DNA of 64,000 bases from contig CM074515.1 of the NCBI GenBank assembly GCA_037379345.1, forward strand, positions 5,642,001 to 5,706,000, read 5' to 3'. This document shows positions 53,081-62,624 of this stretch, in pieces (position 1 is the first letter of the stretch; every line of letters begins with the position of its first letter). The translations under genes and the position numbers were made by a program. The notes beneath the pieces are model-generated. The model was not told where the DNA came from, ran no database searches, and saw only the letters and a program-made list of their open reading frames with translations. Origin of the DNA: Perna viridis. Lineage: Eukaryota.

Positions 53081-53563
53081 CTATTCTTTATCTTTCTTAT
53101 CTTTTCTTGTTTTGTATCCTTTAAATCCTGCCTGAATTTTAACGGCAGCTTTTTCTACCTCTGGGTCATTGAGGTCAATGTCAACCTCTTCCTCTGCCTC
53201 ACCTTTCTTTTCCTCCTCTTTTGTTTCTGATTCTTTGTCCTTCATTCCTTTTCTTGTTTTATATCCTTTAAATCCAGCCTGAATTTTTGTCGCTGCTTTC
53301 TCTACTTCAGGGTCATTTAAGTCTATATCAACTTCCTCCTCTTTAGAGTCTGTTTTTGTTTCTGCCTGAGGTTTACTTTTAGATTCTTTGGATTTTTCTT
53401 CCTCCACTTTGCCTTGTAATTCCTTCCTTGTCTTGTAACCACGGAATCCTGCCTGAATTTTGAGTGCCGCATTTGCAGTGTCAGGATCATTTAAATCTAT
53501 ATCTACTTCTTCGTTCTCTTGTTTTTTATCTTCAGATTTCACATCTGTTGATGACTCTCCTTT
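53081..53563 (-). CDS. SPA17: SPA17 terminal exon with three acidic-IQ modules
   Basis: tttcag|KGESSTDVKSEDKK... then three EEVDIDLNDP...KIQAGF(R/K)GYKTRK modules, ending DKKDKE*. Confidence 0.92.
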   Translation of the reverse strand, partial: KGESSTDVKSEDKKQENEEVDIDLNDPDTANAALKIQAGFRGYKTRKELQGKVEEEKSKESKSKPQAETKTDSKEEEVDIDLNDPEVEKAATKIQAGFKGYKTRKGMKDKESETKEEEKKGEAEEEVDIDLNDPEVEKAAVKIQAGFKGYKTRKDKKDKE

Positions 53564-56500
53564 CTGAAAGAGTTAAAAAAACAAATTTACAATATATTTC
53601 ATTATTGTGTCAGCCAACAGCATGTATCAATGCCACCAACTACCTTTGACAAATAAAGATCACTAAATTAAAAAAAACAAAAACAAAAAAAAACACACAC
53701 ACACCTGAATTCTAAATCACTATGGACCAATAAAAAATCATACTGACAATTAAACTTTGCATACATGTACACTGAAAGTTAATTCCAACTTATAACTTTA
53801 TAAAAAAAATCAATTTATTAAACTTTTTAATCTCACAATAATAAAAAGAAATCTGATAATAAACCAGAACTCGTAATTTTTAATCACTTTAAAACATTGT
53901 CTTCATATTGTGGATTTCTTAATCTGAACCTAAAAAACAGACATTATATAAATAAACATTAACTATAACAGGGAGTTATTTTATGGTATACTGGTTCAAC
54001 TCAAATTTATACACTCAATTTCAAGATCGATAACAAATGCACATCATACATTATATGCGACAAATATTACATGTACAAAGAAAGTTTTATACATCTGTAA
54101 TAGGAATAGTGTTAATTCTGTAGAAAAAGTACTAAATAGAAATCAACATTACTAGTATAAAGTGCACAATTAGTGATATAAGTCATCTAAAAATAGAAAA
54201 TAAATTAATTAATCATACAAGTGACCAATACAACTATGTTTTGTATTCTGGAAAGAAAATGAAGATGAGATTCACCTAGATTTGTCTTCATAGATGTTTA
54301 CATTGGAGGAATTGCAATCAAAACATTTACCATGATTAAGAACTGGTGATATACTAAAACGGTGATTTATTTCTAAAAAAAAATGTAAAAACTGTCCATA
54401 TATTTTATAATGTCAATTTAAACAATGTACTCCTGACATGCTCTTATATTGTGATATAAAGAGTAATAACAAAATTATCAAACTGATAAAAATCTAGGCA
54501 GTGTCAAAAGGAAAGTCTGTATAACAAATGGCAATATCAAGGTAAAATTTATCAAATTTCTGTGGCAACATTAATTTATCAAAGATCATATCTCACAGGT
54601 GTTTTCTTAAATTTGTATACTTTATTGTCAAGACATCCACCAAAAAGAAAAACAAATATTATACTTGACTTGACCAAACTATTTGTTTTAAAAATTCAGA
54701 TGAAGAGAAAATCATTGATTGAAAAATTCTTAAAATTCTAGAGATATCTTGTAAGTAAATAATGGTGGTGATGATGAAGACAATATATGTTATATACTGT
54801 GAAAGTACTATTGTTGGATTTCGTGGGTTAGATAAATCAAGGAATTTGATTCCCAACGAAAAGGATTACTTTACATTATATGACAGGATCATCAAAACCA
54901 TGAATTCAAGAATCCAAGAACTAGTGCTTTTTCTCTAAACCTCAATAAAAAAATGACACCCACAATTATAAATATTTTCACAGTAACTAGTTTACAGATC
55001 TTATATTTGCCTGTTAGTAACCAGAAAATATGAACTTCAGTCAAACCAAATGGAATTTAATTGTAATTTTATAAAACTGCCCTATAATATAATGCATCAT
55101 TAGTTTTCTGGTGCTGCTTCAAAACCTAAGGCGATAATGTGTAGGGAAAAGATAAAGAAGACAATGTACAGGTAATACACAATTGACAGTAGATAGAGGT
55201 ATATATTTTATCTTAAGTCTAAAATGGACGCTTTAGTAAAAGAAAAAAAAAATATTTAGACCAGCTATGGGGAGAATGAATGGGATTACAACAGATTATT
55301 CAGACATGCAGGAAAAGAGAATTTGGTCAAACCTGTGTTTTAATTTCTTTACGAGCTTGGAAACCTTTAAAGCCTGCCTGTATTTTCAAGGCAGCTTTTT
55401 CTACATCTGGATCATTTAGATCAATGTCTATTTCTTCTTCCTCTGTTTGTTTTTCTTCTACTTTTTCCTCTACAGTTTCTTTAGACTAATAGGGTGCAAA
55501 CACAAAGCTGGTTAATAAAAGTGTAAATGCTAGCGAATATAATAAGCTATAGTGAGTATTAGCAGGTATTGCATTGTGTCAGTAGAAAACGTACACATTA
55601 TGTAGCATTATAAAATTTGGGGCTTAAGAAAAACAATGTAAAACAATCAAAATTATTTTTTGTTATTCCATGTTCTTCTCCTGATATATACTGAGTACTT
55701 ATCATAAATGATCTAGTAATGTTTAAACATCAACCAGCTATTAGTGTGACAGAGAAAAAATACATCAAAAATAATTGCAATCTGCTCGAGAAAATTAACT
55801 TACTAAAAAACACATTCAATAAAAACAAAAAAAAATTATGGTCATAGAAAATCGTATACACATTTGTACTGTCAAAATAACTTTCTACCTAATCTTCAGT
55901 GTAACTTTGGTGTAAGAAGAGAGTTTCATGAAATCTATACAAAGAAATGATTAATTGTATGACAACAGGTTGTATAGGCATGCAGTAAAGAAGAAATTTT
56001 GGTCAAACCTGTGTTTTAATTTCTTTACGAGCTTGGAAACCTTTAAAGCCTGCCTGTATTTTCAAGGCAGCTTTTTCTACATCTGGATCATTTAGATCAA
56101 TGTCTATTTCTTCTTCCTCTGTTTGTTTTTCTTCTACTTTTTCCTCTACAGTTTCTTTAGACTAATAGGGTGCAAACATAAAAATGCTAATTTAATATAG
56201 TGTTAAAGGTTGTGTATCATTATAGGAACTGTACTGTAACTTTGATAAGCTAGTGCAACTCTGTATCATCAATCTAAATGAGAATGTTATGCAGTTTCAT
56301 GATAAATGAATCTACCAGTATGTATTTCATGATTCTTGTAATGTAATGCTAGAAATGAGCATGTAGGTACGTGTTAAACACAAATTTATGAAAAAAAAAT
56401 GTCCAGTTTATAATTTCTGTACACTATTGAAATGCAGGGTTAGAAGCTTATTGTTAAGGTACAATGTACATTTAACTTCATCCTGACTCATCGTCTTCAT

Positions 56501-62500: not shown

Positions 62501-62624
62501 AGTATTGTACTGATATCCCCTAGAGAGATATTTGTGTTAATTGATTTCTCTACCTTAAACGAGTCATTGTTATAGAACCTGTCTTCTAATCTAGCACCAT
62601 GTACAGCTGGGTCGTGTCCAGTTT
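53081..62624 (-). CDS. SPA17: Sperm surface protein Sp17 homologue with expanded multi-IQ C-terminus (multi-exon, 5'-incomplete; ~577 aa within the window if all cassette exons are used)
   Basis: Exons with GT-AG boundaries and compatible phases: 62554-62624, 61969-62147, 61365-61509, 59138-59257, 58450-58590, 57235-57387, 56555-56692, 56009-56161, 55333-55485, 53081-53563. The first exon, TGHDPAVHGARLEDRFYNNDSFK, matches vertebrate Sp17 TNFDPAEWGSKVEDRFYNNHAF. The exon for the N-terminal RIIa docking domain was not found and presumably lies beyond 64000. Confidence 0.88.
55333..55485 (-). CDS. SPA17: SPA17 cassette acidic-IQ exon, 153 bp, phase 0-0 (duplicate B, identical to A)
   Basis: Nucleotide-identical to 56009-56161. 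Confidence 0.85.
56009..56161 (-). CDS. SPA17: SPA17 cassette acidic-IQ exon, 153 bp, phase 0-0 (duplicate A)
   Basis: SKETVEEKVEEKQTEEEEIDIDLNDPDVEKAALKIQAGFKGFQARKEIKTQ; attag acceptor, gtttga donor. Confidence 0.85.
56555..56692 (-). CDS. SPA17: SPA17 cassette acidic-IQ exon, 138 bp, phase 0-0
   Basis: QDTSETTKQEEEEIDIDLNDPDVEKAAIKIQAGFKGFQARKEIQSK; tctag acceptor, gtttga donor. Confidence 0.85.
57235..57387 (-). CDS. SPA17: SPA17 cassette acidic-IQ exon, 153 bp (or 147 bp with donor at 57241), phase 0-0
   Basis: SQTKVDQSKQEEEEIDIDLNDPEVEKAATKIQAGFRGHKTRKEMQSKTEVQ; gacag acceptor, gttggt donor. Confidence 0.85.
58450..58590 (-). CDS. SPA17: SPA17 cassette acidic-IQ exon, 141 bp, phase 0-0
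   Basis: EKTDDSKEKEEDIDIDLTDPEVEKAATKIQAGFRGHKTRKEMQSKPE; ttttcag acceptor, gtacaa donor. Confidence 0.88.
59138..59257 (-). CDS. SPA17: SPA17 cassette exon, divergent IQ without acidic leader, 120 bp, phase 0-0
   Basis: ENTKVKEVRELKKTDVDIAATKIQAGFRGHRVRQQHNKYQ; aag acceptor, CAG|gttaac donor. Confidence 0.7.
60255..60419 (-). CDS. SPA17: Alternative terminal acidic-IQ exon of SPA17 (54 aa + stop)
   Basis: cccag|DSATNIDHSTQATASTVPAEEEEEVDIDLDDPDVQKATEKIQAGFKSFMSKKKK*; phase 0; AATAAA on the minus strand at 60170-60175. Confidence 0.7.
   Translation of the reverse strand, partial: DSATNIDHSTQATASTVPAEEEEEVDIDLDDPDVQKATEKIQAGFKSFMSKKKK
61365..61509 (-). CDS. SPA17: SPA17 acidic-IQ exon, 145 bp, phase 2-0
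   Basis: ttttgcag acceptor, CAG|gtaagg donor; EEEVDIDLTDPDVENAAVKIQAGFKGFKARKE. Confidence 0.9.
61969..62147 (-). CDS. SPA17: SPA17 exon with two IQ motifs (IQTEYRRH, IQSSFRGH), 179 bp, phase 0-2
   Basis: tttcag acceptor, AT|gtaatt donor; lies within ORF 61965..62201. Confidence 0.88.
62554..62624 (-). CDS. SPA17: SPA17 exon, Sp17 signature (xTGHDPAVHGARLEDRFYNNDSFK), 71 bp, phase 1-0
   Basis: ttttgtag acceptor, AAG|gtagag donor, EDRFYNN signature. Not in the ORF track. Confidence 0.88.

Follow-up and report, generated by a model that had tools for sequence, protein, structure and literature searches.

A mussel gene with an Sp17-type docking head and an array of acidic-IQ modules, interpreted as the single Sp17 orthologue of its genome

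Sp17 (SPA17) has been studied as a 17-kDa sperm and cilia antigen of vertebrates with one IQ motif, and PEP-19 (PCP4), neurogranin and GAP-43 (neuromodulin) as brain-specific regulators of calmodulin. SPA17 forms dimers and tetramers and has been modelled in radial spoke 1 of bovine sperm (PMC11755891); SPA17/Sp17 is also a chain in the axoneme entries 8j07 and 9fqr. Here we analysed a window of 64,000 nucleotides (G000:C5:5642001-5706000) from the AT-rich, 723-Mb genome of the mussel Perna viridis. At positions 53081-62624, the minus strand carries an exon with the 'EDRFYNN' segment of Sp17, followed by IQ motifs of which two are plain and ten belong to acidic-IQ modules, an arrangement that an earlier note on this DNA had read as Sp17 turned into a calmodulin 'sponge'. 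We are highly confident of the identity and architecture of this gene, which we take as the single Sp17 orthologue of this mytilid mussel, with an RIIa domain, the EDRFYNN segment, plain IQ motifs and an acidic-IQ array. The locus and its relatives indicate that in most animal phyla the Sp17 head and the PEP-19-like modules are one protein.

The RIIa exon was located by a search of the whole genome with the Pfam RIIa model. The domain (PF02197) was found at G000:C5:5712544-5712639 on the minus strand, 6.5 kb past the end of the window, at 46.8 bits against a cut-off of 22.4 (E = 2.3e-9). The open frame of this exon, exon 1a, begins MAVPFSNTKLRVPKGFQNILEGLAREVLRNQPENIYEF and ends at the donor G/GTAAGA (slash, splice site), in the phase that matches exon 2. 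When exon 1a was searched with phmmer against the Protein Data Bank (PDB), residues 1-75 of zebrafish SPA17 came first (7my4_A, E = 8e-17), followed by Sp17 in 9fqr and 8j07 (about 2e-15), Chlamydomonas RSP7 (9e-7) and PKA RIIalpha (1e-5). No second Sp17-type RIIa exon or Sp17 gene was found in the genome search, exon 1a being the sole one. In exon 3, it is the second IQ that matches the Sp17 IQ, both in 9fqr_Ic (E = 4.8e-4) and in 8j07_K, and the DP..(W)G.K.EDRFYNN segment of exon 2 is also present in gecko Sp17 and in invertebrate orthologues. The rank of SPA17 ahead of RSP7 and RIIalpha, the Sp17 IQ match and the single copy argue for the Sp17 identity. With 589-629 aa and 11-12 IQ motifs, the product departs from the Sp17 format of about 150 aa and a single IQ; this format is specific to vertebrates, and invertebrate orthologues have 430-1485 aa. 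The exons are arranged as follows, in the order of transcription.

Exon 1a, coding part, G000:C5:5712525-5712678 (L004:6525-6678), minus strand: Met and Sp17-type RIIa docking/dimerisation domain, MAVPFSNTKLRVPKGFQNILEGLAREVLRNQPENIYEFGSKYFEQMLAVRD.
Exon 1b, predicted alternative first exon, coding part, G000:C5:5706807-5706891 (L004:807-891), minus strand: encodes MGGKFSRLKNFVESKHRKLAGESSSESE.
First intron(s), part inside the window, 62625-64000, minus strand: both first exons lie beyond the window end.
Exon 2, 62554-62624, minus strand: Sp17 signature (E)TGHDPAVHGARLEDRFYNNDSFK; GT..AG joints at either end, present in contigs of four runs.
Exon 3, 61969-62147, minus strand: two plain IQ motifs, DAALKIQTEYRRH and EEDAALTIQSSFRGHQDREKVKQM, called by Pfam IQ as two stretches; joints 62147/62554 and 61509/61969 in four runs.
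Exon 4, 61365-61509, minus strand: first acidic-IQ module, EEEVDIDLTDPDVENAAVKIQAGFKGFKARK, called by Pfam IQ and one of the copies in the module alignment; in four runs, joined to exon 3 and to 58589/58590.
Alternative terminal exon, 60255-60419, minus strand: degenerate acidic-IQ module EEEVDIDLDDPDVQKATEKIQAGFKSFMSKKKK, then a stop; phase-0 acceptor CCTAACCCAG/, in-frame stop.
Optional exon, 59138-59257, minus strand: non-acidic IQ DVDIAATKIQAGFRGHRVRQQ; one low-depth contig.
Cassette exon, 58450-58590, minus strand: one acidic-IQ module, 141 nt, phase 0-0; joints 58589/61364 and 57387/58450 in four runs, donor GAG/GTACAA.
Cassette exon, 57235-57387, minus strand: one acidic-IQ module, 153 nt, phase 0-0; contigs of four runs, weak donor CAG/GTTGGT.
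Cassette exon, 56555-56692, minus strand: one acidic-IQ module, 138 nt, phase 0-0; acceptor CATCTAG/, donor AAG/GTTTGA, contigs of runs X1 and X7.
Cassette exon, 56009-56161, minus strand: one acidic-IQ module, 153 nt, phase 0-0; splice sites TATTAG/ and CAG/GTTTGA, one copy of a tandem duplication.
Cassette exon, 55333-55485, minus strand: one acidic-IQ module, 153 nt, phase 0-0; second copy of the duplication with an identical peptide, placed by splice sites and frame.
Last coding exon, 53081-53563, minus strand: three acidic-IQ modules with E/K-rich linkers; phase-0 acceptor CTCTTTCAG/, stop TAG at 53081-53083.

For the transcript evidence, contigs from four public runs belonging to four studies were aligned over 57150-63100. 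The GT..AG joints 62554/62147, 61969/61509, 61364/58589 and 58450/57387 were present in all four runs, and one X1 contig of 1081 nt reached a word depth of 685. Behind 62625, record 1 of X1 has a loose end of 225 nt whose opening letters are those of the exon 1a end (...YFEQMLAVRD) in reverse complement. Past 57235, the X1 and X7 contigs go on into the 56.6k exon with letters for its opening residues QDTSETTKQEE; the first 21-36 nt of this exon thus come after exon 57387-57235. These joints and continuations indicate that splicing unites the RIIa head with the Sp17, plain-IQ and acidic-IQ exons. Only thin unspliced contigs covered the introns, and since no retrocopy of the gene was found in searches of the genome assembly, the spliced contigs argue for RNA. 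The gene is real and expressed. The last exon is 69% identical to the transcript-derived protein P0007. Two interspersed repeats lie in or beside the gene, at about 62900-63330 and at 59737-60134, the first with at least 40 genomic copies of 84-90% identity; both draw contig depths of up to about 21,000, so depth there is uninformative on this gene.

The same contigs bear on the alternative that the locus holds two genes, a short Sp17 (exons 1-3) and a downstream gene of the type of Drosophila igloo or neuromodulin, with the joined form a product of read-through or of a chimeric assembly. Such an arrangement would agree with the short Sp17 of vertebrates, with mouse neurogranin being a separate gene in the same locus (PMC4098794), with the stand-alone acidic-IQ proteins of arthropods and with the alternative endings right after exon 4, which give products of 229-237 aa with 4 IQ motifs. 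However, the joints from exon 3 to exon 4 and from exon 4 to the 58.5k exon are dominant in all four runs at depths of up to 685, the stretch from exon 3 to exon 4 showed neither a start codon nor a first exon, and the fused form has been modelled independently in dozens of species from at least seven phyla. We therefore regard two separate genes as very improbable.

In the single gene, exon 2 (62624-62554) encodes the Sp17 signature ETGHDPAVHGARLEDRFYNNDSFK, a segment kept in all orthologues, between the acceptor TTTTTGTAG/ and the donor AAG/GTAGAG. Joined translations, which were used for the frame check and the motif count (similarity searches were made with single exons), confirmed that all gene models are in frame. 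The main product is a protein of 589 aa with a pI of 4.9; its 11 IQ motifs reflect an RNA-contig path that bypasses the 60.3k and 59.2k exons. The longest path gives 629 aa with 12 IQ motifs, and the alternative last exon (60419-60255) carries a thirteenth. This terminal exon is bypassed in the dominant contigs and reaches a word depth of about 3.8x in X1. The 59.2k exon can be either a phase-0 cassette of 120 nt (donor CAG/GTTAAC) or, with its frame extended to the stop at 59117, an alternative terminal exon. It is likewise bypassed in the dominant contigs; in X7 record 17 (depth 3.8), position 61364 is joined to 59256, and the contig runs unspliced on to 58841. The earlier note had called the Sp17-signature exon, 12 IQ motifs in the longest path plus one in an alternative last exon, and ten acidic prefixes, had asked for a search for an RIIa exon past the window end and for a test of whether the exons join in one transcript. 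Its counts hold, the RIIa exon exists, and the RNA contigs splice it to the Sp17 and acidic-IQ exons.

Both ends are in phase 0 in each of the five cassettes and in the 59.2k exon (141, 153, 138, 153, 153 and 120 nt). These six exons have poor donors (GTACAA, GTTGGT, three times GTTTGA, and GTTAAC); those of exons 1a to 4 read GTAAGA, GTAGAG, GTAATT and GTAAGG. Among the phase-0 cassette exons, skipping was seen solely for the 59.2k exon. The copies at 55.3k and 56.0k stem from a recent tandem duplication of 676 bp and are 96% identical over 205 nt including intron flanks (copy at 55315-55519). The module copies are otherwise 63-84% identical in DNA sequence (9-10 copies by repeat search), and Tandem Repeats Finder detected no array in 52500-63000 because introns separate the modules.

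A six-frame regular-expression scan of the window yielded 12 strict IQ motifs, all on the minus strand and within 53105-62021, and none on the plus strand; the only two other matches in the window have stop codons in their context. A thirteenth, looser motif, LKIQTEYRRH, lies in the same exon as the motif at 61989-62021. Pfam IQ (PF00612) scored above its cut-off in five of the six IQ-bearing open reading frame (ORF) pieces, with three stretches in the last exon (E = 4.5e-21), and left the degenerate 60.3-kb motif uncalled. Pfam holds no model specific to calpacitins or PCP4 and reported just IQ; its Yop-YscD_cpl, IQCJ-SCHIP1 and VanY labels on the locus fell below their cut-offs and were taken as composition artefacts. 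The tail is of low complexity, helical or disordered.

Ten of the motifs have the acidic prefix EEE(V/I)DIDLxDP(E/D)VEKAA or a near variant, and the modules are close to ...xKIQAGF. In an alignment of nine module copies, 15 of 35 columns were invariant, including D5, I6, D7, L8 and DP(E/D). The best solved match of the last exon is PCP4/PEP-19 (2n77_B, E = 5.7e-5), in an ungapped alignment whose mussel/PCP4 pair includes EEVDIDLNDPEVEKAAVKIQAGFKGYKTRK; the module aligns without gaps to PCP4 residues 28-57. We also searched a profile of the nine modules against 177,635 distinct PDB sequences. Seven of them gave E values below 1e-3: RSP23 (2.3e-10), PCP4, CFAP91 (4.6e-6), neurogranin (1.9e-5), Sp17 (two entries) and neuromodulin (6.8e-5), with myosin marginal at 1.4. 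PCP4 was the sole solved chain that matched the whole module, acidic part included.

In PEP-19, the side chains of Phe30, Ile32 and Met34 insert into the calmodulin C-lobe between its helices E and F, the coil stops at Pro37, with P37G abolishing the kinetic effect, and Asp31, Asp33 and Glu38 form a negative surface that steers Ca2+; the acidic segment tunes Ca2+ kinetics and not binding strength (PMC5122967). The (V/I)-D-I-D-L of the mussel module stands in register with F-D-I-D-M of PEP-19 in the ungapped alignments, so that F30, I32 and M34 have V/I, I and L as their mussel counterparts, and D31, D33, Pro37 and E38 have D, D, P and E. The distance from the module Pro to the IQ Ile is 9 residues, as in PEP-19. 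Judged by their residues, the acidic modules are of PEP-19 type, and the known roles of the PEP-19 residues together with their mussel counterparts are the basis of the module mechanism proposed below. A module query of the whole genome found no acidic-IQ modules elsewhere, including any stand-alone igloo-like gene. The sole other place matched was an IQ-rich open frame of 2927 aa at G000:C14:3451241-3458119 on the minus strand, perhaps an ASPM-type gene by its many IQ repeats.

To place the gene among its relatives, we combined two protein searches. A word search with the last exon returned 713 proteins, including arthropod 'neuromodulin-like' proteins starting MGCNSSK and several proteins with both RIIa and IQ. 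A HMMER search with one of the latter (P0053) gave 131 clusters at E <= 1e-30, many of them with proteins of 500-1700 aa and up to 19 matched stretches. Among the proteins fetched, at least 26 representatives of 50%-identity clusters pair an Sp17-type head with one or more acidic IQ motifs, the number reaching 13 in one of them. Two matches resembling mammalian Sp17 (P0253, P0257) served for comparison alone. The sampled lineages were as follows.

Molluscs, first group: Mytilus (four species, 735-883 aa), Crassostrea (494-577 aa), Ostrea, Saccostrea, Dreissena, Mya, Ruditapes, Tegillarca, Sinanodonta, Ylistrum (1485 aa).
Molluscs, second group: Haliotis (four species, 465-613 aa), Patella, Pomacea, Biomphalaria, Liolophura (687 aa), Argonauta.
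Annelid: Owenia (428 aa). Nemertean: Lineus (1132 aa). Flatworms and a rotifer, given here as groups.
Echinoderms: Holothuria (1119 aa), Lytechinus (499 aa). Hemichordate: Glandiceps (742 aa).
Cephalochordate: Branchiostoma belcheri (467 aa). Cnidarians: Nematostella (431 aa), Rhopilema, Sanderia.

The acidic-IQ module is nearly letter-for-letter alike in Nematostella, amphioxus and the mussel, and the number of acidic modules per protein ranges from 1 to 13 between species, with 13 in Ylistrum. A few orthologues are named Sp17 (Mytilus edulis, Holothuria). Other RefSeq names include triadin-like, DNA ligase 1-like, enolase-phosphatase E1-like, titin-like, golgin-like, CFAP91 and ASPM homolog; annotation goes wrong here systematically, misled by the E/K-rich IQ tail. 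The RefSeq models contain the RIIa exon and offer up to 16 isoforms per gene. A Pex19 label (PF04614) on Mytilus and Glandiceps models (P0312-P0362, P0155, P0381) was rejected as a feature of the locus, the Pex19 exons lying 32 Mb off on the same contig; it is probably a composition artefact or the mark of a fused model. A different RIIa head (..PLFIRL..LEGLAREVLRHQPENI..) was observed in proteins of the copepod Tigriopus and of unnamed marine transcripts (P0122, P0131, P0138, P0078), which have up to about 19 acidic-IQ modules in 1270-1700 aa. The copepod proteins indicate that some arthropods keep a docked form beside the short igloo type.

Because it extends from cnidarians to amphioxus, the fused multi-IQ layout appears to be ancestral for animals and the short vertebrate Sp17 to be derived. 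The second IQ of exon 3 is the counterpart of the vertebrate IQ, so that vertebrate Sp17 corresponds to exons 1-3 only. More tentatively, as a possibility to which we give somewhat less than even chances, the calpacitins may descend from the Sp17 tail. An ancestral gene with RIIa, FYNN, IQ and acidic-IQ parts and two promoters would have split on the vertebrate stem into SPA17 (exons 1-3) and a neighbouring neurogranin gene, PCP4 and GAP-43 would be paralogues that arose after genome duplication, and igloo would be a lipid-anchored isoform without the Sp17 part. In support of such a split, the amphioxus, hemichordate and echinoderm proteins, that is, all non-vertebrate deuterostomes sampled, are still fused and those of gecko and mammals are short. 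Apart from two radial-spoke proteins, the module profile picks exactly Sp17, PCP4, neurogranin and neuromodulin among the solved chains, and the genome search of the mussel revealed no stand-alone acidic-IQ gene. Nrgn and Spa17 share one locus in the mouse (PMC4098794), and spa17 has been used as a name for zebrafish nrgnb in print (PMC9415131). The fused deuterostome proteins, the short vertebrate Sp17 and the common Nrgn/Spa17 locus fit a split of one ancestral gene on the vertebrate stem. This reading also presumes a certain order and orientation of vertebrate SPA17 and neurogranin, and a paralogon relation to PCP4 and GAP-43.

These comparisons qualify what the earlier note had proposed. 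Its assignment of the modules to the PEP-19/neurogranin type is upheld by the match of PCP4 over the whole module, and its evolutionary link of Sp17 with the calpacitins is plausible, supported by their co-retrieval by the module profile and by the fused deuterostome proteins. A sponge function with a dozen bound calmodulins is a possibility. The idea that Sp17 was turned into a sponge in this lineage has to be given up, as the same layout extends from cnidarians to amphioxus, and in relatives the Sp17 exon was not missed by automated annotation as had been expected, since the RefSeq models of many molluscs include the Sp17/RIIa exon under misleading names. The architecture is already predicted in the protein sets of other invertebrates, and we found no description of a multi-IQ Sp17 or of an Sp17-calpacitin link in the searchable literature; as most subscription journals lie outside it, this is weak evidence of absence.

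The mussel gene also has a second candidate start. Exon 1b was located by regular expression and local tblastn, 2.2 kb upstream of exon 2. It encodes MGGKFSRLKNFVESKHRKLAGESSSESE, a sequence in line with the consensus for N-myristoylation, and its donor G/GTATAA is in the phase required by exon 2. The first 15 residues are identical to isoform X2 of Mytilus trossulus (P0344). Several mollusc isoforms without RIIa start MGGKLSRL, MGGKFSRL, MGNNFS or MGAKFSKF, fused directly to ETGHDP; MGxxFS N-termini on ETGHDP are modelled in Haliotis (two species), Ruditapes, Solemya and Lymnaea, and exon 1b is conserved in six mollusc models. Exon 1b would be a conserved alternative first exon that swaps the docking domain for a myristoylation signal, like that of Drosophila igloo. 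We infer that two promoters may yield either an AKAP-docked or a membrane-anchored form, the latter paralleling igloo and GAP-43. On the far side of the gene's other start, about 3 kb upstream of exon 1a, lies a reverse-transcriptase-like ORF on the minus strand (L004:9608-10000 and L005:1-1797; 599 aa with a 131-aa continuation), which looks like a retrotransposon insertion near the promoter region.

The conservation of exon 1b across molluscs and its resemblance to the igloo-type proteins that start MGCNSSK raise the alternative that the main role is neuronal or at the membrane, exerted by the myristoylated isoform, and that the RIIa isoform is a minor form of testis or cilia. Igloo, GAP-43, neurogranin and PEP-19 are indeed neuronal (PMC9618489). 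Yet the one upstream continuation read from a dominant contig (X1, depth 685) is exon 1a, and we consider this alternative quite unlikely.

As a whole, the evidence is best explained by an ancestral-type Sp17 orthologue whose RIIa-docked tail serves as a local, fast calmodulin store at the axoneme, a reading that we regard as reasonably probable; for the mechanism taken by itself, docking plus calmodulin store, we see chances that are even or slightly better. The RIIa head would dimerise, probably with ROPN1L, and dock on AKAP-type helices, for example that of RSPH3 in the radial spokes of sperm flagella and cilia. At rest, without Ca2+, the IQ motifs of the tail would each bind about one calmodulin, and the acidic DIDLxDP segment may rest on the C-lobe of calmodulin and quicken Ca2+ exchange as in PEP-19, so that the protein would keep a local, fast-responding calmodulin store at the axoneme. 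Skipping of the phase-0 cassettes could alter the number of IQ sites and hence the size of the store, and use of exon 1b could exchange the docking head for a myristoyl anchor, giving a membrane isoform like igloo and GAP-43. Heterodimers of SPA17 and ROPN1L bind an AKAP helix at 82 nM (PMC8339350), and RSP7/RSP11 dock likewise on RSP3 in radial spokes.

Several points weigh against this reading. SPA17 homodimers bind AKAP18 weakly, at 9.6 uM (PMC8339350), IQ motifs are able to bind other EF-hand light chains, and both calmodulin loading and the axonemal site are what we infer. The runs are labelled as probable RNA and name no tissue. The 56.0k, 55.3k and last exons, which lie outside the aligned stretch, rest on clean acceptors, frame continuity and orthology, and short-read contigs may collapse over repeated modules, which makes the combination of cassettes per molecule uncertain.

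The array could also be mainly structural, with E/K-rich linkers and IQ sites loaded with calmodulin or calmodulin-like light chains forming a long semi-rigid rod or spacer in or between axonemal complexes and with Ca2+ buffering secondary. Myosins use IQ arrays as levers, two radial-spoke proteins, RSP23 and CFAP91, are among the nearest IQ relatives, and the length of the array varies as widely (1 to 13 acidic modules) as in spacer proteins. Consecutive IQ motifs in myosin lever arms are about 23-25 residues apart, whereas those of the mussel protein are separated by about 46-58 residues with charged linkers, apart from 25 residues between the two plain IQ motifs of exon 3. The acidic DIDLxDP segment, which tunes Ca2+ kinetics in PEP-19 (PMC5122967), is moreover near-invariant from cnidarians to chordates. 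We thus consider a mainly structural role unlikely and prefer the docked calmodulin store.

Reading the gene as a hybrid of Sp17 and calpacitin is sound, and its value is a comparative one. Taken for this genome by itself the gene is ordinary, since it was present in every mollusc examined; it is the normal invertebrate form rather than a novelty of one lineage, and is already public under wrong names. The questions that it opens concern a local, fast calmodulin pool in cilia and sperm, the setting of calmodulin capacity by the splicing of one-module exons, and the origin of the vertebrate calpacitins. Mussel gill cilia are a classical model of Ca2+-triggered arrest.

Elsewhere in the window, G/T-rich minisatellite blocks (24011-25131 and 30739-37145; periods of 18, 33, 37, 39, 65 and about 98 nt, up to 35 copies) raise the GC skew to as much as +0.58 across 30-38 kb. 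An intron-free ORF of 308 aa at 12158-13084 on the plus strand ends in a basic-leucine-zipper region, resembling what we take to be a transcription factor of the Maf family. A Ser/Lys/Asn-rich ORF of 379 aa (43140-44279, plus strand) lies between the satellite block and the Sp17 gene.

The closest counterparts of the mussel gene are the predicted invertebrate orthologues, which share the order of RIIa, FYNN, plain IQ(s) and acidic-IQ array, and differ solely in module number, linkers and isoform set, under unrelated names. In Mytilus, the N-terminal 183 residues are 86-88% identical to those of the mussel studied here. Vertebrate Sp17/SPA17 (PDB 7my4, 8j07, 9fqr) shares the extended RIIa (R2D2) domain, the DP..G.K.EDRFYNN segment and the IQ form EE.AAL.IQ..FRGH..RE.VK.M. 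It has a single IQ (gecko, mammals) and ends about 15 residues after it, at about 150 aa, whereas the mussel protein has an extra plain IQ before this motif and 8-10 acidic-IQ modules after it (589-629 aa), and adds a predicted alternative myristoylated N-terminus.

Among the calpacitins, PEP-19/PCP4 has its hydrophobic plug, Pro and acidic side chains in the register of the mussel modules, and neurogranin and neuromodulin/GAP-43 match over the IQ core only, their solved chains holding just that part. Calpacitins are small, stand-alone proteins of one module, whereas the mussel gene strings modules together, ten at the locus, and adds a docking domain. Igloo and the arthropod 'neuromodulin-like' proteins (130-190 aa, MGCNSSK, 2-3 acidic-IQ modules) have the same DIDL.DP...AA.KIQA.FRG modules in tandem; the latter are 40-51% identical to the last exon of the mussel gene, with E values down to 3e-40 (Penaeus). 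Their igloo-type Gly-2 lipidation signal parallels exon 1b, but they lack RIIa, the FYNN segment and the plain IQ motifs, and have fewer modules. In Chlamydomonas, RSP7 is the next-best docking match after Sp17, and RSP23 and CFAP91 have the most similar IQ among solved chains. RSP7/RSP11 (RIIa), RSP23 and CFAP91 (IQ) all belong to the calmodulin-associated radial-spoke system, in which, in contrast to the mussel protein, they are separate polypeptides with other domains (NDK, EF-hands) and without the acidic DIDLxDP segment.

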